Assembly: GCF_000150275.1 (NCBI RefSeq)
Contig: NW_002060950.1
Location: forward strand, 316,679-380,678
Length of the DNA stretch: 64,000 nucleotides
Direction of reading: 5' to 3'
Source of the DNA: Trichoplax adhaerens
Taxonomy: Eukaryota > Animalia > Placozoa
In this document: piece after piece, positions 1 to 33,180 of the stretch
Position numbering within the stretch: the first letter of the stretch is position 1
Layout: each line of letters opens with the position of its first letter
Translations under genes and position numbers: made by a program
The notes under the pieces: generated by a model
Databases searched by the model: none
What the model saw: only the letters and a program-made list of their open reading frames with translations
Told to the model about the DNA's origin: nothing

Positions 1-3000
1 CGCTGACGAAGGACGACAATGCAGCTACCCTTGAACATGGCAAGAAAGAGCAGATTAAACGTCATTCTGATGCATCGCCTTGCACTGACAACTCCGATCA
101 TAATGAGGTATTGAATTGAACTACGTTTCACCAATACCTTCAATATTCCTTGTCGATAGTCAATTTGAATACACTAATGCGAATGAAAATGCATCATCTA
201 TAACGTTAAAAACATCAATCAATTGACTTTTGCATTTAAAAATGATTTCAATTTAGATGTATCAAAGTTATTCATACAGTACAGCTAACTGCTTAACTAC
301 AGGTAAATATAGTATATAAGGATATTTACTTGTATACTGGATGGATGAGAGATGACATCAATACGCGAAGAAACGATCGAAAAAATTAACATAATTATAG
401 TTCTCATCTTCCCAGTCTATGTTTAACATGTTCCATATGCTGCTAATGTAATAAATCTCATAATAAACAATTTCTATCATTATGAATAATAGTTGTATCG
501 AATTAAGTATCCACTCCATACAACCAACTAGAAGCAAACTACCTCTTAATATTATTTAAATACCAAAAAAAATGTTTTCAGAAACTAGTTTTAAAATGGA
601 AAATTGGAACATGTAAATAAACAATCCATCTCCTATTAAATTAGGTACCACCAGCTAGTCAAAAACGACTGTTAGAAGAAAAGAAAATTTCATCACCGGT
701 GTGGCTAAAAATCAAGCGCGGTCGATTTAGTAAAACAAATACAAAGAAACGAGCAATTGGCAACAGTAATATCATTCATCAACCTCTCGATTCTGATAGC
801 GATTACGTTGAATCTGATGATGATAATAATGCAAATACATCAGAAATTGAAATGGTCTTATCTCAACTTCCAGCCAAATATACTGCAAAGCCGGTAAGCT
901 ATCCTATGTTCATCTAATTATATGTGCATTATTATATTGATTCAATTAAAGGAGACAACCTGTTAATGCTCAGCGTAATGGATAGATCTTAGAGAAATTA
1001 GGAGTTTTTCTTATGCGTATAGTAATCACTTGAACTACCGACAGGATATTTTTTCACTTCTCAGACATTAAAATCTACTGTAGACTTTGTTATATTAAAA
1101 TTTTAATTAATGTCGCAACCGAACCCCTTAGCAGTATGAAGCCATATGCTTCAAAGTCAATCGGAAATAATTAATTAGTTCATTAGCCGATCACCATATT
1201 GGGTAAATAATTAGGCACATGAATTTCTGAATATGACAGGGGTATTAATCCTAAGCAATACCAAAAACCATATTCTAAAAGCACATCAACTATCACCAAA
1301 AGTTGATCTCATTTTCGTCTAACTTTCAAGGATACAACTGATATATATTATCCTGTATATATAACTCATTCATTAAAATATTATGACTTTGAAATTTCAA
1401 TATTTTATCACATTACAGTGAATGTAGTCTATCAATCCTGCCATATCAACGCACCAACATTACTAAGAGAATACGCATATTGTGGCATAAATACTGTTGA
1501 ATTCTCATAACAAATCCTTATCACAATGCAGCACGATATAGCTATAGTCTATTGCTTTTTACGATTTTAAATTGAAGTTATTCAATAAGAACATAGTACT
1601 AATGTAAGATAGAACGTCTACCTTTAAGATTAGTATTTATAACGTTTTTCGTATGAGGTTTCATTATTTACTGTTCGTTACCATCAGATAATTATAATCC
1701 TATGCTAGATTTAGGCACCTTATAGATTAGGAAATAAAAATATAAAATATACTCCATTATCTGATTTTATGATATACAGTAGTATCTAGATAATAAAAAT
1801 CAATACGCCTTAACCAATTTCTATATTTCATATCGGAGTGATAATTAATTGTAGCCAAGTAAAAAAATTTCTGGCAAATTTAAAATTCCGTAGTGGGACT
1901 ATTGATATTCCTTAAAGTTACGTATAATTAGTAATACATTTAACGATTATTTACAAACTACCGTGCATTAAGTGGTAAATAATTTCGAATAAGATGGTAC
2001 AGTAATAGTAGTATCACTGTAAATAGCAACTGCAATTTCTATATAGTAAATATGAATTAAATCATACCTACTAAATGTTAGCCAAAGTCAACCTTAATTA
2101 CAGTATTATCACTAATAGTTTTCTGTCTTATGCACAAAATATAATAATCGATCAATAGTTTGGTGCTTCTATTATAGCGATAACTTTAGAGTACTGTAAG
2201 CTAAACCTCGACACGATATACGCCAGATTGGCGTATTCAATTTATAAATTTAGTCGATGCTATTCTATGGGATAATATTTTACAGACAAATGCCTAATCA
2301 GTGATTTATCACACGGCATGATTTTGTAATCATAACTATGGATGTTGTAACTATTTCTTACATTCTTAATATATGTGCATAGCATTTGCCCATATATACT
2401 CTATCTATTCTTGCAGTAGCTAATTAAAGTTTTTCATGCGTTATTCTCTTACTCAAAAAGTCAAGTAGTTGGGCGTGTGCACGACCATCAAGTTTGCCCG
2501 TGAAAAATCGAAACAAGCATATAACAGATATCCTAGAGGTATGCTACTGAATTTAGAAGCTGCTGAAGAATAAGTTATTAAAATTAGCTTAGCCAAAATA
2601 TCAACTTCACGTCATTTGCTACTCGCTTACTTGATCCATTTTTATTCTATATCTTCCAGATCTTACAAAAAAAATATGAAAATTTAGGAGATCAATGGCG
2701 TGTAAAAGGATACACTAAAGCAATTTCCTCAATTAAGAATTATCCTAGAGAAATTACTACCCGAGAGGTTAACTGAAGCGACATATGATCATCTTGTGAT
2801 TGTTGCACATAAATCACTTTATGATGTGATACAATTTTGTCATACATTATCAATTTAAATTTATTTAGCTTAATTAATTATAAAATCCCCAGTATACTGT
2901 AACTTATTTAAATTGGAGTATAATCAATAACGAACGCTTTCATATAAGAAATACCCACAGTATCGATCGTCCTAGAATAAATCATGGTACAATTAATATT

Positions 3001-4630
3001 TTTATTTCTTAAATAATTTTTTGATCAAATTTGTAATTAACTAGGAAGCAGAGGCAATTCCAAATATCGGAAAACGTCTAGCAGATAAAATATGGGAAAT
3101 TATTAGTTGTGGTCATCTTAGAAAATTAGATTACATGGATAATGATGTACAGACTGCTCTAAATGTCTTTACTAAGATATGGGGAGCAGGTCCAGCTACT
3201 GCGCACAACTGGATTGCTCAAGTAAGTAAATAGTTAATTACTATTTAGAAGGATCACTAGCATTACACCTTTTACATATTCAATTAAGCTGCCGTGAAAA
3301 ATTGGACCGGAGCAAAATTGCCTTACTAGTTGCAACAGTATAAAAGAAGCTAAATCACTAAATTACTTATTTAAGGGCTTGTATACACTGGATGACATAC
3401 GGGCCAAAGCAAAACTAAATTACCATCAAAGCATTGGATTAAAATACTACGATGATTTCAATGAAAGGATTCCTCGAGCTGAAGTGGTAGAGATTGAAGC
3501 TGTAGTAAGCGATATTTTATTAAGAATTTTTCTTGATATTATCATTGCAAATTAGCGTCTGCAATCGGGTCGAATAATTATAATCAAGACTATAATTTAT
3601 GTCGATAATTAAGAACTAATCAAATTTCTTATTAACAGATTCGAGAAGAAGCTACAGCTATTGAACTTGGCCTAGAAGTGATAACATGCGGCTCTTATCG
3701 CCGTGAGAAGCCTACATGCGGTGACGTAGATATTTTGATTTCACATCCAAATGGCCGCTCTCATCAAGGTGTTTATCATAAGCTGCTGCGGCGGTTACAA
3801 GCTAAAGGTACTTGATAAATGATAGTTCCTTAGTAATATTGGACTTTGTTAAGAAATACGGAAATATCTTATTTGATTAATCATACCTTTGTACATAAGA
3901 TTTCTTAACTGAAATCTTAGTTAATCAAGACGTCGATATCGATCATCAAAAGTTATTAGGCGTTTGTAAATTGCCAGAGGAGGGTAGAAAGGTACAATCA
4001 TTACAAAAAACTGTATCAAAGAATTGTAGTCAATATATTCCTAATTTTAGATAAGCTTCAAATAAATATATCTTATATTTTAATTTTTATAACTTTCAGT
4101 ATCGCCGCTTGGATATTATTGTTGTCCCTTACCGTGAATGGGCTTGTTCTCTTTTATACTTTACTGGATCTGGGCACTTTAATCGTTCAATGAGGTTACT
4201 TGCTCGGAAAAAGGTAATAAAATATTTGTAAAATTTATTCTACTAGGCGGTATTAATAAACGATTACCTAAACAACTAAATTTAATATTATTATTAATCT
4301 ATTGGATACACATTAGAGAATGCATCTCTCTGAACATGCAATTAGCGTTGGAGTATTACGTAAGGTGACTGCATGCTCTGTATTAAAATATGTATGTTGA
4401 GTTATTGATTTATTATTTATTAATGTTTAAATAAACATTTGCCTGTTTCAAACAGTGCATCGCTACAAAAATATTTAATCTATTGCATAAATTACTTAAT
4501 TTTAATGTGCTTGCTTCGTTAGGGAAATCAAAAACTAACTCGTGGTACCCCTGTACCCACGAAATGCGAAGCAGACATTTTTGCTTTACTGGGACTCGAC
4601 TACTTAGAGCCAAAAGATCGAGACTGTTAG
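1..4630 (+). CDS. POLL: DNA polymerase lambda (family X), 5' end (BRCT region) outside the window; exons approx. <1-107, 645-892, 2461-2537, 2660-2766, 3045-3220, 3376-3504, 3639-3807, 3900-3991, 4100-4213, 4318-4363, 4523-4630
   Basis: Spliced translation gives the 8-kDa lyase region ([27 protein letters not shown]), HhH motifs ([21 protein letters not shown]), the catalytic [53 protein letters not shown], and a C-terminus [14 protein letters not shown] like Pol lambda. GT-AG introns. Confidence 0.92.
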
Positions 4631-5633: not shown

Positions 5634-8600
5634 TTAGCTATCTAATTTTCGATATTTATCAAGCCAGTTATCAAGCATTCTATCCACTTGAAATGGCATC
5701 CTAGTTATATTTTGTTTAGCCACAATAATTCCACTAGATGTACATTCACAGTCTAACCATTCGTGCATTAGTTGTTCTTCACAGCCAAGCTGTAATAACC
5801 AAATGAACAAAAATAAGCATCAGCTACAGCATAAATATAATTGTATTTGAAACAACTACAAATAGATAGTTAAAAAATCATTATATTACCTCAGAATTAA
5901 GAAGAAAATGTACTGGTAATGGAACACTTAAACTATCTATCAACGGCAGATATATTGTCTGAGTATTTTCACAATTGTCTACATTAGCACCAGCAACTGC
6001 GTCATTGACTGTATCCGATTCGATTCCAACAACGGCGGAAAAATGACCGCGAGTATAAGCTAAAGCAACTGGATTTGACACGCAAAAGCTCCTTTCCCAT
6101 AACAAGGGTAAATATATTCCTGTAATTAACAAGCGCAAAGTTAGGAACTGAGATATAATACTAACCTGTTCTATGCCTAATGACTAATAGAATGAAGACA
6201 TTACCTTGGAATCGCGCTAGACCTAATGTTTCCCCTTTATAGCTGTTAACATATTTTACACCATAAACAATTATTGGTCGCCTCATAATATGCGCTAATA
6301 CAAATATGTGTATTTGCTCTAATGGAGCTCCTTTTTTTCTAGCGCTGTCAATAATATTTGACCAATCCTTAACGCACTGCTGTTCGTCTAGGCTAAATTC
6401 TAAAATACTTGCTTGTATAGCTTCTGCTTCTCGCCAGCGTTGATAGAACCTAATTTTAAAACTTGTAGTTAATTTAATTTGAATCCAAAATCAAGACGTT
6501 CAAGCAACATTTAACAGGACACCCCAGCAAGCAATCATTACGATATTGCACACTACTAAAAACCTTGGATAAGGTGTTCTCACCTGTCTTCACAGCGAAG
6601 GCTCTCCCTTAAGGCGCGTCGTAATACAGCATTTTCATCCATAACTCCCCAAGTAACTTGCATAACTGAATCCAATAAACAATCGCCAGCTGTTCGATTC
6701 CATAAGGTATACAATTTACTGTCTAAGTCTTCCGTAATTTCGTAACTCCAGTTGATAACAGTGGAATTAACTTCTAATTCTAAATGCAATTTAAACGATA
6801 TACATGAATGTTGGAATAATCTGAAGCTTATAATTTTTTTGATTGCACGGCGTTTGGATAATGTAGATAAATATATTACATACCATTTTGAACATCTCTA
6901 TCGATGATTTCGTTAAACAATTGTTCTTGTACATCAGGAGATAAACTGTGAATCCCTAACCGATTTATCAACAGTAATTAAATCAACTAATTGCAATTGC
7001 CGTAGAAGATAGTTTCAGGGATTAGTAGTCCTTGATGGTATATTGTGATATTTACGCTATCAATTGCTATTCCATACGTACGGTTAACTTGTATAAAACT
7101 GAACTACTTACCAGCCGGTAAGGCAAATGTGACAATATTTGTCACAAAATAGCAGGGCCACTCTCCTTTACGTTGTCTAATCGACATTGATACAATTTCT
7201 CGAATGTCTTGGGCTAATTCTGGTTCAGCATCTGAAGGTAAACATTTATGAGCACGTCGATCGGCTACTGGTGTTAATAGGATATCTAACAAATCCTGAT
7301 GATCATATTTAATAGCCAGATGTACCAGGGTATACCCAATTTCTACTGGATTCGTCCATTTTAATAACATCAAATCTTCATTAGTCAACTGTCTAGATAC
7401 ATCGCCACCTAGAATATCCAGTTTCAAGAAAAGTATTATTTAGGACAATTTGATTATTATGATACAATTGCAAGGCAATATTTATAAGAAATAACCGTAA
7501 TTTAACTTGACTACTTATATCATCAGCAATGTCATGCCCAATAAAGATTATCTGCATTTCACCTGATGCAATGTATTGTTCTACTGGTCTTCGTTTGCCA
7601 GTCTTAACACCCTGGCAAGCGCCCAACCATGACCAATCCTCAGTGGATAAGTGATTTTTGATCTGGTTGAGATCTTCTTCAGTTATAGGAAAAGCATCAT
7701 AGGAGTGAAGGTTATCGATTTTTACTTCAGTATCGTAAGGATTATCGATCATCTCTTCTGTTGGTGAGTAGGTGATGTAGCAACTTTCAGGTTTACCTCG
7801 ATTACAAGCATGATTTGTAAGTTGATTGACTGAGGGAGACTTCGATTTGACTGACGTTGACGTAATGTATTGGTCGCTATTACTACTGGTATTGTTTTGG
7901 CTACTATTAAGTTGATTAAGATCAATTTGGGCTTCTTGTGGATAACGCGGATTTTGGCACATTACACAGCGCAAAGATTTGATGAAATTTTCGTAGGTAC
8001 ATCGACTACAAATCCATTTATTACAATATTTATAATTAATCACATTAGTACCAGTATCAACATTGGTACTAGTACTATCGCCATGAGATGTAGGATTATT
8101 CGAGTGATTCCTTTCATTGTTTTTATCGTTATAAAATTGCATTTCTTCTCGTGTACGAATATCTGAATAAATACTCTGTGATGGCACTCTTTTAGTCGCA
8201 CCAGGTGAAACTGGTCCCATTTGGGCCATGGGTTTGATGTTGCTATTACTATTATTACTATTATTGCTCTCTTGTTGGATAGATTCATTCTTCCGGTTGG
8301 TGTGTCCTTTTGTTGCATTTTTGCGCACGGCTCTAGTATAAACCCAACCACACATGGAGCAATTGGATGAATTGAGGCAATTTTCATAAGTACACGACGC
8401 ACAAGACCAAATTTGATCACTTCCACGTTGATATTCATTAGACTGATGAGCATTCTTACTGTTATTATCGTATTGAGTAATTAATAACGTCGACTGTTGT
8501 GTACAACCAGCCGATCCATGGCTTTCTTTTGCCTTTTCAATGTTGGTATAACACATAGCACAACGCACTGCTGACATGTGATTATCGAAAGTGCAGACTT

Positions 8601-23226: not shown

Positions 23227-26200
23227 TTACAATTTTAATTCACGACAAATATTCCTGAACCAAGACTGAACTTGCTGTTGATGACGGTGAATCCAACGAA
23301 TTTTTAATCTTAATCTTTCGATTTCCATTTCTGCCAATCTTTTATAATTTTGAAGCCTTTTATTGTAACTAAAAAATAGTTCGACCTATAATGGAATCGA
23401 AAGTTTCTATAAAATTTTCTCATTACAGGGATAACTACGGTACTAATAAGGAAGCAATCTTTGTTTTAGTAAAATATGCAATTTTATTATTTAGGTCTCT
23501 CATATTAACAAATGATTATTATTGGTCTACCTACATTTTGAAGTTGCATCTCTGTTTTCATTTGACATATGGATAAAGAAATCAGCTTAGGCATACTAAA
23601 AATCTCTTTTCCATATCTAAGTATAATGTTAAACAGAATATCCTGTGATCATATATTCAATTAAGTTATACGAATACAAACATCTATATAGCAATTCCTG
23701 CGATAGGGAACTAAATTTGCTATTATTTCCCTGATTTAAAGCCAGTTAAAAATTTAATTTCAGTATTTACTGTTAAATCGCGTAATGAGTAGCTAACCTA
23801 TTATAAAATTGATCCCAGTGTGAAGTAATAAATTTCCATACTAAATCTGTGCCTACTGGATTTTTAGCAATAAGATCAAGAATTTGGACGGTCTGATCAG
23901 GTTTAACTTGTTTCTCATCCATAATTATTTCTAACAATCTGTGAATAAAATGTTTAAAAATTATTAAATTCAGACGCTGTTATACAGCAGTATTAATTAT
24001 TCACGCATATAATAGTCAAGAGATAATATTTTCGTCCTGCTTAATAAACTTCATATGATGAATAAATTTACACTGTAAGGCCTGCATATTGCATAAGGAT
24101 AGATTGTACTGTTAGGTATATAATGATACATAAATAATATTATTAACCTATCGAAATTTGAAATAACGTTAAAAATTAAGCACTACCACTTCTTAGTGAA
24201 ATTCTAAGGTAGCTGTATTGTCTATCACTACACTCTAATCAAAATTTAATCATCTAGATACAGTACTAGACCGCTTTAAACAATTTTATATTCATTACTT
24301 ATTAATTATGGCGTTATCCTGATAACTTGTAAATCTTTGTCGTAAGAATGCTAACCTTTCTTATAACTTCAATATACACGTAAATTAAAATATAAATAAG
24401 TCCTTTCCTATACTCTCCAACCATTGCTGATTACACTATCAGTACAACATAACTCTATAACCTACTGACCTTTTCAATAACTTTGGATTTTTTGATGCAG
24501 CTAATCCTTTCATGCACAATTTTTTGCTATGATCATCGTCAACTTCATAATATCTTTTCAATACTCTATTCCAATCATCCTCATCACCAATACTAACTCC
24601 AATTTCCACAATAGCGGGCACCAAATTCGGCGATAAACTATATAATATGGTAATTACATTATCATTTTAAGTCTTATACCCTAGCTAGTAGCTATAGCTA
24701 CACTATCAAAGTAGAAATTAAATTATTGCTTATGGTTTTCTGATTCTGTGACATAGCAAAACGGCAATATTTAAAGATACGAAGCTATCTCTCATGTAGG
24801 GTACGTTTAGTAACAACTACAACCCGTAAACGATTTTACTTATTTAATAGTACCTATAACCATGTAACCATCGCTGAAATGCTCTTTTAATTTGATAAAG
24901 TACCGGTTTATATTCAGCCCATGACGCCATGCGAAGTACAAGAACTTTCATCATACTGTTAAATTTACCCAGTAATAATAATTAATACAATCAATTTTAA
25001 TTAGTAAGCCCTTAATATATGGAATAAAAAATTTGAAAGAACTAACATTTTATTGATATCATATTCATCGACTTGATTATTTTGATAAAGGTTTGATCGT
25101 AGAAGATATAGGATAAATTTCTAATATTCAGTTGATATATTAATTGAAATAAGAATTAAGAGTACTAACACATTTTATTGCTGTTCGAAAATAAACTTTT
25201 AGCTTGCAAGACGATTCATGTCGAAATATGCTACTTATGATTCAATTTGATACTCCTTCAATCAATTCTAAGTGTAATAACATCATTTGACCCAATTATT
25301 ACCTTTGCTTTCTGCTTAAAAGGTTCATCAAGAATTGAAGCTAGAAACTTTAAACGCAATATGCCCATGTTGAATGCTTCATAATCATGTTCAGCAATCA
25401 GATAACGCGTCATATTTAAAAAAATCTCAATATTTAGCAGGTCCACCCTAAATTAGATATTCCAAATTTAACTATCATGAAAAAGGAAGTAATTTTAAAT
25501 GTAATTCTTATTTTAAGATCTTATTTATTTTACGTATTTATCTTCTACCTTGATAAATAATAAGAATCATCCAGCAGATTTGCTCTATCATGACTGCTAA
25601 AGTACTATTTTTAATAAAGTGAGATTGTACATCAATATATTGTTATTAGTAAATCTAGCGGACATCAAGATATTATCAAACATTAAAATTGCGTGAAACC
25701 GAAATCTAAAAAAATAATTTTATTTCCGCATATCGAATTATCTTATTTTATTTAATAACCATAAGAGCTAGATTGTCTATTTATTCAGATCTAAAACTAT
25801 TCCTGACGGATCTGTTGTTAGAGGTAGTACGATAATACCTGAGGCTGCTGCTGTAATAGATCAACAAACTTCTGCCAAAGATCTATCTCATAATTGATTC
25901 GATAAATGCCTGTACGATTACAATTTCCTTTAATCCAAGATGTAGATGGAGGTAAAGGAATCATCGCTAATTTGTATAAAAAGTGCAACGCATAGCTATC
26001 AGATATGATAGTACTTTTATGAAAGATAAAAAGTGACGAAATTACGTTTTGTCCTATTAAAAAATCTATTCTGTAATACTTACAACCATTCAAATCAATT
26101 AGTTTACGCTGAATAAAACCGTTTTCTGTCATATAGCAAAAGGGTATCAGCCATCTAGATCATTGTTTCAATATGAATTAGAGACTTTACAAGAAATATA

Positions 26201-29200
26201 TATTATCTGCATCAACACCATGGTGATACGGATAAGTCAATAAAATTATAGCGATCAGAAATGAATCACCCTAGACTGATCATTAGATTTAACCATCTTC
26301 ATATATTGAAAAGAATGTCTTAAGATGATTAAGTCGGATAATTTTATCTAAATAAAATAATTATTAATGCTTTACCTAGCTCTTAAGGTATGCACGCGTC
26401 CTTCCATAAATGGCGATTGACTTATGTTTACCATATTGCTTTTAATTTTCATTGTTAAAAGTGGATAATTCTTTTGGTATATCCATGTATCCATAACTTC
26501 TCCTACATTTATTAGATCATTTACCTGTAACATCAATCAGAATTACTATCATTGAAGTGGACAACTTTATCCTCCTACAGGGTTTATCGCATTAGAAATT
26601 GATCAATATTATGATTTTGTTTTATAATCATATAATCCGGTATTGATAACATCAGTTTAACCATTCTGGTATAATTTATAGGACGGCATGTATAAGCTAA
26701 CGTTATAAATTCTTTGCTGTGTAAATAAAATCGTAAGATCAAATACTACATTAAATACTCTTAAAATTTTTATTTGTATGTGCATTTCAGCAACTTATAT
26801 CATGCAATACATAATTGCAAATCATTGGAAAACTATCATTTAAAAATTATTCTGTTCCGATGATAGAAAAATGTGTATTTCCCTCTTTGGATCTAAATAT
26901 CATCTAATTAATTATTTGCATATAGCTGTGATTCTAGTATATTGTAGGTATTGGAGCTTTCTAAATCAATAGGTCATGCAGTAATTTATATCAATACATC
27001 AACTTCAGTAATAATTAGAAAATATTACATATACTTTGGAGAACTGCAAACATATGCAATCAATTATTAGTTATGTCTCTGGCACTAATACTACTTGATA
27101 TTAGGAACACAGTGTATATATACACAAATCAGAATACATAACATTTACAATTCAACTGGCATTAATATTATTTCATGGTAATGTTGACTAGAGATTATTT
27201 TTTTATTAATAAAACTACATTACTTCTATCAATGGTGTATATAAAAGGATGGATACCTCGGTAAAACTCCGCCATAAATCATGGTTATTAGCATTTCCAT
27301 ATTCATATTTACGTAAAAACTTTTGAACACCCTGAACAAATGATGATGGACCAATGTAATGATACAGCATACGGATTAAAGAAGCTGCCTATTGGAAAAG
27401 ATACGCCAGCTAATCATTAATTTTCAATTATGAAGCGGCTCTTAGTAAGGAATATCTCTTAGTTTAGAAGATAAGCCAGGAATGATAATAGTCAATTGTA
27501 AATTTTTATTTGGCAAATGACTAAAGAAAAGTTGTGTCACTATCAAAAATTAATCTTACCTTACGATATGAAATAGAATCAAATTGCGATTTTATGTTGA
27601 TCTGACTCTCGATAGGTTGATGTATTGGATGGGAATATATTGAGCTGTCAAATTGCATTGCATTTTCATGAGCAGCGCTGACAATAAATCGACACTGTTC
27701 ATTTAATGTTCGAAAAAGAATGTTAACAATCATAGTAGTACTTAATCTGGCTACCTTATATCGTAAATAACGATAATATGTATGTATATCTAGATCTAAA
27801 AATCAGTCATAATATAAAGTTTTTTAGCAGGTACAAGGAGCTATAATCCTAAATTTCTGTTTCGTTTAGAATTTCTCATGAATACATATATACCAACGAT
27901 GGCATAGGAATCTAATGCACTAATAATCATGTAGGTGCTGCATGATGCAGCAAGTACTTTAACATGAAATAATTTTTTATCGCTACTTATTATTGCTGAA
28001 TACATAATGGAGTATTTCAGCTATAAAATCCAAGAAGCAAAATGTATAAATATACCTCTACATATTATGCAAGATTATTTATTAACAATTAATGATTATA
28101 TACTAATAGTAGCTCAGTATTTTAGCGAATTCTATAAGTAAATGATGAAAATGAATATTGATGCTACTTATATTTTATGGCTACGTATATACTAAAGTAA
28201 TATAGTATTTTAGCTAAGCCTGTTAAATAGATAATGGATCCGAAAGTAAGGTTAGATTACTCATAATTGCTGACCATGTAATAATGGTGATACACCATTC
28301 CAATACTATTGATAATATCCTAATAGTGAATAATGCATTCATACGTTTTTGATGATTGCTGATAGTTGTAATAGAGTAAAATGCATTATAATGATTCGGT
28401 ACTTTGACTATATTAACCAATTAAAAATTTTAAGAGTAAGTAATATCTCTCCACATTTAAGATCTCTTATATTGGCGATAACATATATTTCAGATTTGAT
28501 ATTCGCGATCTACTATGAATTATATCATATGTTATATGATTTATTTACTTACAAGATTAAGATCTCGATTCATAAATTTACAGCCTAACTGACTAGCAAA
28601 GGTAGCAAAACCTTCCTTTAGCCATAGATCATTCCACCATTTCATTGTGACCAAATTCCCAAACCACTGTAATAAAGAATCATTGTTTAAGGTAAAGGTG
28701 TGAAATAATTATATATCGTTCGTCAAGTATACACTAGAGTTACTAAAGAACTTTAGGGTGTATTATGCTTTGAGACAACTAGGACGATTAATGATTATGG
28801 TTTAGTACTAATCAATTAATTCTATAATTGATCGTAAATAGGGTGACGTAAAAATCATCCTAGGTTAAGATAACCTGATGGGCAATCTCATGAGCAAGAA
28901 CGGAAGCCGTGGAGGCGTAATTTCTCATCGAGCAATACTGCATATCACATAGTAATTTATCTTGCATTATGGTGATTAGTCCCCAATTTTCCATACCAGC
29001 AACAGCAAAATCGGGTATGGCTACTAAATCTGTAAATAAGAATTCTGTCAATAATATTTTTCAACGCCGACTCATGCAACTACAGACTGTATAACAATTC
29101 ACAATTATTACTAAGTTATTGCAAATACTATAGTTCCTGCATTCTATGTAACAAATGATATAGTCATAGATTAGTTTTAACTACCGTGTGAAAAGTTTAT

Positions 29201-32200
29201 AATATTATCATTTAATTTGCCAGTATGCGATCAATTCCAAATAATGATAAAATTTTTAAAAGAAGATCAACTCATTTAATCAATATATATGTTGAATTTA
29301 GACGGCTATTGAAAAGAATATTGAAAACTGACTTACCTAATTTAGGTAGAGGGAAAGTAATATTAAACAAATTACTAAATAATGAGATGTAAGCAGTGGC
29401 TAATTTTAGAGCATCTTGTGTTTGTTTAATATTTTCTTTGCTAGTCCACGTTCGAACCTGGAAGTAATAATCAATCAGTGCAACTTTTCAGTTTAATTAG
29501 ATTTAATAAATAATAAGTTTAGAATATTAATATCTGTTCCTACTATATTGGAACAATTCTCAATAAGTAACGTTTATTATACTGCTAAACCTCATTTCAT
29601 GTTCAGGAATTTTTAATGGTATATGTTGGTATACTAAAGTAGCTCTGGGTGTGAAAGATAGAAGTAAATATTGATCTATTTTCTGAAATATACGGTATCT
29701 TATATCCATCATCCATCCATCCATACACAGAAAATTATTTTATATACCCTAATACAGGATTAATCTGAAGGGATATATTAAAAGTTATTTGCTAGAAGTC
29801 TTAGCTAATACAGTATAAGTTCGGTATATGGTATAGGTATCTTATTATCTTTAATGACTTACCAAGATACCATTGGAGGAATATCGAGCTAAATTTTCAA
29901 AATCTGAGACTACAAAACCGACTAAGTAAGTACTCATTTTGACAGTGGTAGCAAAAGAAACTAAGGTATGGCCATTGGGTAATATAGAATATGATTGAAC
30001 TGGCATATTGGATAACGCTGAATAGCCAGGCAGGCATGTAATTGAAAGTTTAAAAGTAGATTTCATTGATGGTTCATCAAAGCAGGGAAAAACCATTCTT
30101 GCGTCGGTAGGAGAGAGCTGAGTTACATATAAATATCTAAAAATAGAAGTAAGGCCAAATTTATATCCTATTGAAATTGTAGCAATTACCGTACATAGTT
30201 CTATCCGAACGATAGAATACTTCCATTAAAGAAAATTATCAATACACCCTGTATAAGTCAAGGCTTAGTCAAGCGATAAATACACAACTAAAACAGCCAC
30301 GCCTATAACGATGCTTATCGTATTAACATTGTCTAGATTTCGTCGCTTTGCTTTTAAACAGAGTCATGTCTACGGGAAAATTATAAACTCCTGCTGCAAA
30401 AGTGATTATTGAGTCCATTGATGAATAATTATAAATTACTTCTATTCGTAATGGTGTATTTCGAGCTATTATTACGATTTTCTTATCATTTTAATGTAAT
30501 AGAATGCAATCGCGAAGATAACGCTAGTTGCAGCTAATAATAAGGCTCGTATTCATTACAAATATATGTCAGTAATTATTTAATCAATCAATGCAAAATG
30601 ACTCAGCAATCCTTATTTATTATATAAGTTATTATACTGCAATAAAATTAATTTCTTGACTATTATACACAATAACGCTGTCTTTGAGAAATCTATATGG
30701 GTAGCAATGTAAAAGCATCAATAGCTCTCATTTGCCACTAATATTCGTATCCTCCTAAAATGGTATGAAATTCTTAGCCGTTTTTGCAAAGCTGTACTGC
30801 CTGTAAGAAATTTATATGTGTAGCAATGCAAAGAAATGAAACCCTTATTTATTATGTAATGGATCTTTTTGACATGATATCCATTTCTTAACCGCTTCTG
30901 TATACTGTTGCTGCTTCTAAGAAATTTATGTGTAACGGTAAATAAAGAGTCCACAGCCCCCATTAATTACATATATGTTATATAATTATCTAACACATTC
31001 TCTTAAAATAGAGCCAATTTCTTAGTCATTTCTATATACTGATTCTGAAAAAAATTACAAGTATAGAAGCACAACAGGCAAGCAATTATTTCGCTAATGG
31101 AAATGAAAGAGTTGATAGCATCTACCTGTATTAATTACGTGCATATCTAGAAAAAACCATGGCATTCCTAGTCATTTTAGTCTCATAAAGTGTTTCTCTT
31201 ACAAATTCAGTAGTTATTTGCAACTAATGACATGTTATTGTCCATACTTTTGCTACAAACAAGTATAAAAATTGCGTATTCAATAGATACAAAAGAGTCA
31301 TTGATTTCTATTTCATAACAATCAGTATCTAACTGAAATTGTAATCATTTCCAAACCTTTTCACCAGAGTGTTGCCTTTGAGAATAATAATGGCTATTTT
31401 TATAATTAACGACATGTTATTATTGATTATAGTTATTAAAACAAAAGTCCATTTATGTACGAAATGAATAGAGAAATTGTCAAAATTAAATAATCACAGT
31501 CATTTTTAAGAGTCGTACAGTTATTATTGTTTAAATGATGATCAATATATCATTTTAGGACAGATTTAAAATCGAGTAGAGAAACGATATACCATAAAAA
31601 ACAACTGCCTTGCCAACAGTATGTAATAAAAAAATGGAGATAGATTGAATATAAATTGGATTGTAAATTACCGAAGCTGATTTACTAGTGATAACGGTCA
31701 AGATCAGTATTAGGTAGGCCAAATTTGAGCTAAGATAGCTTGGCAATGGACTATAATACTAATAGATTTTTTCAATTTATTCATAGATACAATCTCGCTA
31801 CTAAGGAATAGATTTAATTCGTCATATCACAACGAATACTTTAATCATTAATATATATAAAGTAGACTCTGATTATACGAAAGATTAATAAAGATCGCTT
31901 ATCAAGAGTTAAATGAGATATGATATCGGTAAGGTTAAATGATGATAAATTAGGGTATTAATCCTTCATCATAAGCAAATAGGTTAGTAACTGTAAATGA
32001 TAGATTAAACTACTAAAAAAGAGAGAGAACGTTATGAATGTAATTATTGTGCCATTTATCTAAGGTATTCATTGATAGAATACACTTTAGAATTTACGGA
32101 AATAGGATCGAATTTGCTGTTTAACATGATTGTATACAAAAATATAACAATATCCAAACTCAGACAGGCGTTGTGATTTGATTTAATTACAAAATAACTT

Positions 32201-33180
32201 TTTTTAGTTATTTGAGATGTAGCAGGATAATATATTCTGAATATTAGAAGCAAAGATGGTTTCACTTTCGGATAAAATGCATACATTAGAGAAACTGTAA
32301 ATCCAAAAATTATGAATTGGGATAAAACGGAAAAATAGATATAATATTTACTAGATCAGTACTTAAAATAAAAGGAATAGGAAACGTTCATATTGAGAAT
32401 GGATCAGACTGAATTAGATGTATTAAAATTAAAATTAGAATCATAAAGGTTTCAGACCTTTGATTAGTGTAGTAATCGAATTTTGTTTTACCTGGTTTGT
32501 TTGGATCGATTTTGGTAATAGCTGCGGTAGAAGCCATAACGTCTATTAACTACAATTTGACTCTTAAACCATAGATGTAACTGATAATGATGGCCGCCGA
32601 TTAAATGATGATCGAGTTGTATATGAAACAATTCATTTTTTAAATCTTGCTGAACGTTAAGGATATGGTATTTCAGTCCATTGCCATAAACAGCCATCCG
32701 TTGGATATCAATATCTTTTTTATGCAAAACAATTCTATCGGTCCTATTCAAACAGAGAATTTCAATTTTACTTCTGCCAATAATATATAATTGTTGATAA
32801 TTAGGCTGTAAATCGATTTCATAATGTAAAGGTTTGATTTCATCTGGTAAGCGTTCGATTCGATCGAAGGTCGTATCATTTTCAATAATAGAGGAATTAA
32901 ATTGGGATGACAGCAATGAATTCAGATAAAGGTTAGAAATAGTTGGATTAGCTTCAAATGTGCTAGTATTATGAGTATTTTCCTGCTTTATTTTATCCTG
33001 ACTTGTAAGCAAAGTCATAGTAATAAGAAGTACTACTATTGCTACGACAATTGAAATTAGGATAATATCAGCTTTCTTGTTCATTTTAGCAGGCAACATG
33101 GCTAGCGATCTGAAAACGTTGTTATCCTCTCTAGAAATATCGGCCACATCATCTTTCTCTACTCGTTGATATGAATGCAT
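23227..33180 (-). CDS. Type II membrane M1 zinc metallopeptidase with TRH-degrading-ectoenzyme (pyroglutamyl peptidase II)-like signature; multi-exon
   Basis: N-terminal TM anchor ([20 protein letters not shown]), [119 protein letters not shown]1-like C-terminus. The ORF-track start at 33228 is a GTG at a splice acceptor; the first ATG is at 33180, so an upstream exon is likely. The last-exon boundary is approximate. Confidence 0.88.
30680..30950. repeat. Degenerate ~115-bp tandem repeat (about 2.5 copies) in an M1 peptidase intron
   Basis: agaaat(c/t)tat(at)g(g/t)gta(g/a)c... recurs at ~30687, ~30806 and ~30920; tctta(g/a)ccg recurs at ~30771 and ~30886. Confidence 0.7.

Follow-up and report, generated by a model that had tools for sequence, protein, structure and literature searches.

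We analyzed a 64,000-nucleotide stretch of the Trichoplax adhaerens genome (contig NW_002060950.1, positions 316,679 to 380,678, called the window here) and the M1 metallopeptidase gene that lies in it, in which a serine and a lysine occupy two active-site positions as they do in the vertebrate ectoenzyme TRH-DE. The window is AT-rich, with about 30% GC, and carries one M1 metallopeptidase gene, a multi-exon gene on the minus strand that runs from 33180 to ~23230. The splice sites were read directly, and every exon junction is GT-AG and preserves the reading frame. Exon 1 is an open frame whose start Met is retained in an orthologous fragment (P0281, described below), and its 3′ end supplies two bases of an Arg codon and is followed by a GT donor. 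Single exons served as queries in all of the database, family, and structure-chain searches. The exons and sites are as follows, in window coordinates.

32492..33180, minus strand: exon 1, with the start Met (MHSYQ...), the 38-residue cytoplasmic tail, the anchor, and the beginning of the N-terminal M1 domain (PF17900, E = 4e-14)
33007..33066, minus strand: type II signal-anchor of 20 residues, preceded by KMNKKAD (positive-inside), read by eye from the exon 1 translation
29863..30136, minus strand: exon 2, which completes the N-terminal domain, with TQL-S-PTDAR and FPCFDEP (PF17900, E = 3e-25; aligned to ERAP1 residues 130-224)
30112..30114, minus strand: Ser codon (TCT) in TQLSPTDAR, the first site for anchoring the N-terminal amine
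29337..29457, minus strand: exon 3, which ends in FPLPKL plus one base and has an equally long homologous exon in paralogues
28875..29029, minus strand: exon 4, with AGMEN and HEIAHQ (PF01433, E = 1e-15; aligned to IRAP and APN)
29000-28986, minus strand: AGMEN exopeptidase motif
28892-28875, minus strand: HEIAHQ zinc motif, which closes exon 4
28553..28666, minus strand: exon 5, with WLKEG (PF01433, E = 2e-14)
28624-28610, minus strand: WLKEG, with the Lys codon at 28618-28616
28615-28613, minus strand: Glu codon of the third zinc ligand, directly after the Lys
27560..27694, minus strand: exon 6, ending in SISYRK, splice sites read (PF01433)
27568-27566, minus strand: catalytic Tyr codon, within the SISYRK that closes exon 6
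27257..27388, minus strand: exon 7, AASLIRML...WRSFTE, which closes the catalytic domain
26524-26376, 26154-26084, and 25966-25839, minus strand: exons 8 to 10, with the beta-sandwich linker followed by the first part of ERAP1_C, splice sites and phases read and no stops
25719-25600, 25452-25261, 24666-24442, and 23949-23788, minus strand: C-terminal ERAP1_C exons, approximate bounds from open frames and tblastn matches
~23376 to a stop at ~23230, minus strand: last exon, approximate bounds from an open frame and tblastn matches

An exon-by-exon Pfam scan gave the domain order Peptidase_M1_N, Peptidase_M1, ERAP1_C and placed the gene in the M1 family through PF17900 (E = 4e-14 and 3e-25), PF01433 (E = 1e-15, 2e-14, 1e-5, and 1.5e-9), and PF11838 (E = 5e-9 on 24442-24666). 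A preliminary description of this DNA had put the enzyme at 28553-30137. That range holds exons 2 to 5, with its upper end one base off, as exon 2 starts at 30136; the type II anchor that it also named is present and lies outside the range, in exon 1 (33066-33007). The motifs on which the description rested (TQL-S-PTDAR, WL-K-EG, AGMEN, HEXXH-X18-E, and the catalytic Tyr) were all recovered when the minus strand was read and aligned to ERAP1 and APN. Across the junction of exons 4 and 5, exactly 18 residues separate HEIAH from the Glu that completes the HEXXH-X18-E zinc site, and the transition-state Tyr in SISYRK aligns with the Tyr of M1 references. The exopeptidase motif keeps Met-Glu-Asn and has Gly and Ala swapped relative to GAMEN, a variant shared with two other representatives. 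The zinc ligands, the general base, the GxMEN Glu, and the transition-state Tyr are all retained. In gapless phmmer alignments to solved structures, the Ser stands opposite the Glu in TQFEPT of ERAP1, and the Lys stands opposite the Asn in WLNEG of APN. In addition, the window protein has ITIMQD where TYRE usually follows GxMENWGL. One hydrophobic stretch after a basic 38-residue tail, with no signal peptide, gives a type II layout (read by eye), and exons 1 to 10 hold eight N-x-S/T sequons. As read from the DNA, the gene is intact and probably expressed, and its product would be a glycosylated M1 zinc metallopeptidase, anchored in the membrane as a type II protein, whose catalytic domain faces the extracellular side.

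M1 aminopeptidases grip the free amino group of the substrate through a Glu or Gln at the first anchor site together with the Glu of GxMEN. TRH-DE has AAMEN as its exopeptidase motif, a Ser at the first site, and a Lys before the third zinc ligand. In work by Chavez-Gutierrez et al. from 2006, the signature is said to consist of Ser-269 and Lys-463; the Lys reportedly forms a salt bridge with the GxMEN Glu, and alanyl-aminopeptidase activity reportedly appears once the two residues are reverted. An N-terminal pyroglutamyl (pGlu) cap makes peptides resistant to ordinary aminopeptidases, and the behavior of placozoans is driven by secreted peptides; we know of no enzyme that removes the cap in these animals. 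Two substitutions in the catalytic domain have been described as the conserved signature behind the narrow specificity of TRH-DE among M1 members, and the APN branch has been called its closest relative (PMC7225337). In T. adhaerens, numerous peptides with a pGlu cap have been reported, as has a glutaminyl cyclase located in endocrine cells (PMC9545775). None of the papers searched connected TRHDE with Trichoplax. The window protein resembles TRH-DE (TRHDE, MEROPS M01.008, EC 3.4.19.6) in being an M1 enzyme of type II topology with Ser and Lys at the two sites, an altered first half of GxMEN, and intact catalytic residues.

To place the pair among the paralogues, we took a census of M1 loci from a six-frame PF01433 search of the whole assembly (105,631,681 bases, 1414 contigs), reading the sites exon by exon. 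The 105.6-Mb genome holds ~21 M1 loci, many of them in tandem arrays (~8 genes at G000:C1414 8.87-8.98 Mb and ~4 genes at G000:C1409 0.10-0.145 Mb). The loci fall into two clades found in this genome only, plus a single-exon PSA-like gene (L001) and one LTA4H-like gene (L030/L112). The first anchor site is mostly Glu, with Gln in four loci (L093, L094, L096, and L105) and Ala in L099, and the window gene alone has Ser. The residue before the third zinc ligand is mostly Asn; it is Lys in the window gene and in L102, L103, and L104. Those three paralogues pair their Lys with Glu, so the Ser-Lys pair is unique to the window gene within the genome.

The paralogues that share the Lys differ in condition. 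L103 and L104 are adjacent (G000:C1414:8937000-8956999), have Glu at the first site and WVKEG and FLKEG at the second, and are sisters (support 100/99) in the seven-gene clade that also holds the window gene. Because they sit inside that clade, the Lys was either gained twice or lost several times there. L102 (G000:C1409:127000-136999; catalytic exons at locus positions 6639-7075) reads NEIAH, with the first zinc ligand lost, along with FTGMEN and WTKEG; this copy, which shares the Lys, has probably lost its catalytic activity. Among the loci with Gln, L105 (G000:C1414:8874000-8883999; locus positions 6038-6501) has open exons in which all of the catalytic motifs are degraded (TTANW for GAMENW, YQIAQ for HExxH, and WLPES for WLNEG), and it may be a pseudo-peptidase.

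Next to its own paralogues, the window gene is distant from everything else. Its overall identity to any outside M1 reference is 36 to 41%. Blastp bit scores taken exon by exon and summed over 11 exons came to 593 for the paralogue L110, 496 for the next paralogue, and at most ~420 for outside references (best outside total by tblastn, 462 bits), and L110 was the top match in most exons, the fast-evolving ones included. L110 lies on a different contig (G000:C1411, ~604-610 kb). It shares with the window gene 41% identity over 485 aligned columns, the lengths of exons 2, 3, and 4, the matching exon order, and the domain order, whereas its motifs are canonical (TDFEP, GGMEN, HEVAHQ, and WLNEG) and it keeps the Glu and the Asn that the window gene has replaced. 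Against solved structures, the bits from four exons were 196 for IRAP, 189 for ERAP2, 187 for ERAP1, 168 to 179 for APN, 151 for APA, and 134 for PSA; these scores show no preference for the APN branch, and no structure is clearly closest. No TRH-DE chain was seen in the four exon-wise searches of solved structures. ERAP1, ERAP2, IRAP/LNPEP, and ANPEP are like the window gene in their three Pfam domains, 45 to 50% identity over exon 2, the HEXXH-X18-E site, and the catalytic Tyr, but they have Glu or Gln with Asn at the two sites and act on free N termini.

The trees started from full-length references aligned with MAFFT, to which the exon translations were added one by one as fragments before the rows of each gene were merged column by column. 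A quick tree of 53 rows joined the window gene to L110 (support 96), and both fell in a clade (95) whose seven genes all come from this genome. A careful maximum likelihood tree (LG+C20+F+G4, 32 rows, 570 columns, the four motif columns masked) recovered the same pair (bootstrap/Shimodaira-Hasegawa-like approximate likelihood ratio test [SH-aLRT], 98/90) within the same seven-gene clade (98/94), and the topology for the window gene and L110 did not change when insect domains were added. Single-exon trees (23 to 229 residues) were noisy, with L110 nearest in 4 of 11; the deep branches between clades lack resolution, and the amino acid composition of the sequences from this genome is deviant. 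Four bilaterian domains with Lys before the third zinc ligand, from a crinoid, a dragonfly, a stick insect, and a mosquito, share the two-site state in intact M1 domains and form a clade of their own (SH-aLRT, 94) that leaves out the window gene. An approximately unbiased test rejected joining the window gene to that clade, a group chosen after seeing the tree (delta log likelihood = 37, P value = 0.012). Because the window gene is sister to the canonical L110 in a genome-restricted clade and the test rejects the alternative grouping, these results indicate that it is a duplicate, made in the placozoan lineage, of an ordinary aminopeptidase with Glu, GxMEN, and Asn, and that its TRH-DE signature is convergent. 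Kinship with TRH-DE is not supported by this indirect placement, made against references other than the vertebrate enzyme: on the evidence at hand, the window gene is not an orthologue of TRH-DE and is nested in a placozoan-only clade beside a canonical paralogue.

We also asked how often the two residues occur together across the M1 family. The exon 2 HMMER search covered 1.84 billion proteins, and the census used hidden Markov model alignments of 130 domains from the 150 best representatives (clusters at 50% identity). Written as first site and residue before the third zinc ligand, Glu/Asn accounted for 56 domains, Gln/Asn for 23, and Ser/Lys for 4. Ser was found in 6 of the 130 representative domains and Lys in 8, and Lys accompanied Ser in four of six Ser domains versus 3 of the 108 domains with Glu or Gln (Fisher test, P value = 7.5e-5, uncorrected for phylogeny). 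In a metagenome scan with exon 2, all of the readable sites among 60 relatives were Glu and Asn, and none of the relatives exceeded 56% identity, bar two short stretches of 18 and 31 residues. The claim that the window gene has Ser and Lys where most M1 enzymes have Glu or Gln and Asn is borne out. ERAP1 was among the best 150 representatives for exon 2, and none of these 150 combined Ser, AAMEN, and Lys.

The bearers of the pair are scattered. Ser with Lys occurs in the crinoid Anneissia japonica (XP_033121289, P0096, annotated “aminopeptidase N-like,” which in an atlas look-up fell into generic “aminopeptidase” clusters only), in domain 1 of a protein of the dragonfly Ladona fulva (KAG8235179, P0020, residues 9-965), and in domain 1 of one of the stick insect Timema cristinae (CAD7410180, P0010, residues 2-872); the protein of the mosquito Anopheles culicifacies (A0A182M616, P0143) has Ala with Lys. 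These are the four members of the bilaterian clade above, which may be an invertebrate counterpart of TRH-DE. The pair is also present in P0072, which falls in the PSA-like outgroup (100/99) and is closest to Ape2-like enzymes of fungi, with 38% identity. Finally, L032, on a 3445-base Logan contig (SRR13325274, positions 816-3300), is an M1 protein with a signal peptide, TQFSP, AAMEN, HEVGHQ, and WLKEG. Because these bearers sit in separate clades (the crinoid and insects, the PSA/Ape2-like P0072, the PSA-like L032, and the window gene), we conclude from their placement that the pair arose several times, in at least three separate lineages, and its recurrence looks like a recurrent functional switch.

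L032 was considered as a relative of TRH-DE on account of its Ser, AAMEN, and Lys and was rejected, since its nearest kin have Glu and the PSA-type FPCWDEP. Its source is a GC-richer eukaryote with short introns, and its introns after HExxHQ and Y-x-K are placed as in the window gene. A word search with P0047 gave PSA-like fragments.

A word search with exon 1 returned one relative, P0281, on an 835-bp metagenome contig with 30% GC (L031, ENA ERZ23499339 scaffold_116764). P0281 is 46% identical to exon 1 of the window gene, begins with the same MHSYQ, and scores 198 bits against it and at most 93 bits against any paralogue. The contig evidently stems from a divergent placozoan-like animal whose DNA was present in an environmental sample. 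Because the orthologous exon 1 is open on this divergent contig, we take the window gene to predate a deep split among placozoan-like lineages and its frame to have been kept since.

Taken together, the pair, its recurrence, and the retained catalytic residues are best read, in our view, as those of a convergent surface omega-peptidase for N-blocked, likely pGlu, peptides, a reading that we favor tentatively and with confidence somewhat short of even. An ordinary aminopeptidase would have been duplicated in the placozoan lineage, leaving L110 as the sister copy. The first-site Glu would then have become Ser and the Asn before the zinc-ligand Glu would have become Lys, so that both features that hold the amine were lost. 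As in the model for TRH-DE, the Lys would form a salt bridge with the GxMEN Glu and neutralize it, aminopeptidase activity would be lost, and N-blocked peptides would be accepted. At the cell surface, the enzyme would remove the pGlu cap from secreted peptides and thereby end or alter their signal. The predicted substrates are placozoan pGlu peptides, and neither TRH nor a TRH receptor is implied. If this is true, an animal without neurons would have a dedicated off-switch for pGlu-capped peptide signals; peptide signaling needs such a switch, and the window gene is a concrete, expressible candidate for the step that removes the cap. Moreover, the nonrandom pairing of Ser with Lys in several unrelated M1 lineages suggests that omega-peptidases of this very large family could be recognized from sequence by a simple rule. 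The bolder claim, that a placozoan M1 aminopeptidase independently became a pGlu off-switch by the same two-residue switch as TRH-DE and that the pair predicts omega-peptidases in general (in insects, echinoderms, and PSA-like enzymes), is one that we consider less likely than not.

Several observations weigh against the omega-peptidase reading. The narrow specificity of TRH-DE surely needs more than two residues, and the window protein has AGMEN where TRH-DE has AAMEN. Omega activity in the nonvertebrate Ser/Lys enzymes, the window protein included, is a candidate property. Two census domains have Ser without Lys; Lys occurs with Glu in the three paralogues of this genome and in insect enzymes, where it may serve another purpose. 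The P0281 contig, which supplies the one orthologous exon found, stops before the Ser and Lys sites. The terminal branch of the window gene, at 0.95 versus 0.80 for its sister L110, shows no burst of adaptive change. An M1 phylogeny had been proposed in the preliminary description as a check, and the one built here places the window gene with L110 from rows of merged exon translations and from references that omit vertebrate TRH-DE, APN, and IRAP. The same description would have given up its idea if the pair proved common among unrelated invertebrate M1 enzymes with ordinary aminopeptidase activity. The findings go part of the way there: Lys alone is not rare, being found in three other paralogues and several insect enzymes, and Ser with Lys occurs in insect, crinoid, and PSA-like proteins.

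The chief rival is that the window protein still works on free N termini as an ordinary aminopeptidase, with an altered S1 preference or lower efficiency, in which Ser and Lys reflect drift or fine-tuning in a much-duplicated digestive or surface family. Relaxed constraint is common among the ~21 tandem-array loci, which show Ala, Gln, Lys, Thr, and Pro states as well as dead copies, and both the combination of Lys with Glu in three paralogues and the GxMEN Glu kept in the window protein fit this explanation. It accounts poorly for the simultaneous change of both amine anchors, for the association of Ser with Lys, which exceeds chance by far over the whole family and recurs in independent lineages, and for a frame kept open since before the deep placozoan split; on balance we think it unlikely. 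Were it correct, the two-residue signature would lose its predictive value outside vertebrates. Another possibility is that amine anchor loss, which would weaken exopeptidase binding, has left a surface protein with little or no catalysis, which would use the M1 fold to bind peptides, as a receptor, or as a scaffold and would leave N termini unprocessed, or else an enzyme that cuts within peptides or takes off a different blocking group, such as acetyl. The clearly dead paralogues L102 (NEIAH) and L105 (YQIAQ and TTANW) show that such losses occur in the family, and ITIMQD in place of TYRE points the same way; unlike those copies, however, the window protein has its HEXXH, third zinc ligand, GxMEN Glu and Asn, and catalytic Tyr intact, and we regard this possibility as improbable.

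That the window gene is instead a true orthologue of vertebrate TRH-DE would explain at once why it has both the two-site signature and the type II topology of that enzyme, and the crinoid and insect clade implies that the signature is old in Bilateria. The unsettled deep branches leave room for orthology, and the deviant amino acid composition of an AT-rich genome could pull its sequences together in the trees. Nevertheless, the union with the canonical L110 inside a genome-specific clade, the rank of L110 as top match in most exons, the rejected grouping with the bilaterian Lys-type clade, the presence of ERAP1 but no Ser, AAMEN, and Lys type among the best 150 exon 2 representatives, and the lack of preference for the APN branch among solved structures all speak against orthology, which we consider very improbable.

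A six-frame search of the whole genome for pyroglutamyl-peptidase I (Peptidase_C15, PF01470) gave no match, a weak negative given that short exons can escape such a search, and one that we count in favor of the omega-peptidase reading. Within the window gene, no long conserved open frame was seen in intron 1 (30137-32491), which measures 2355 bases; the other introns of the gene are ~100 to 900 bases long.

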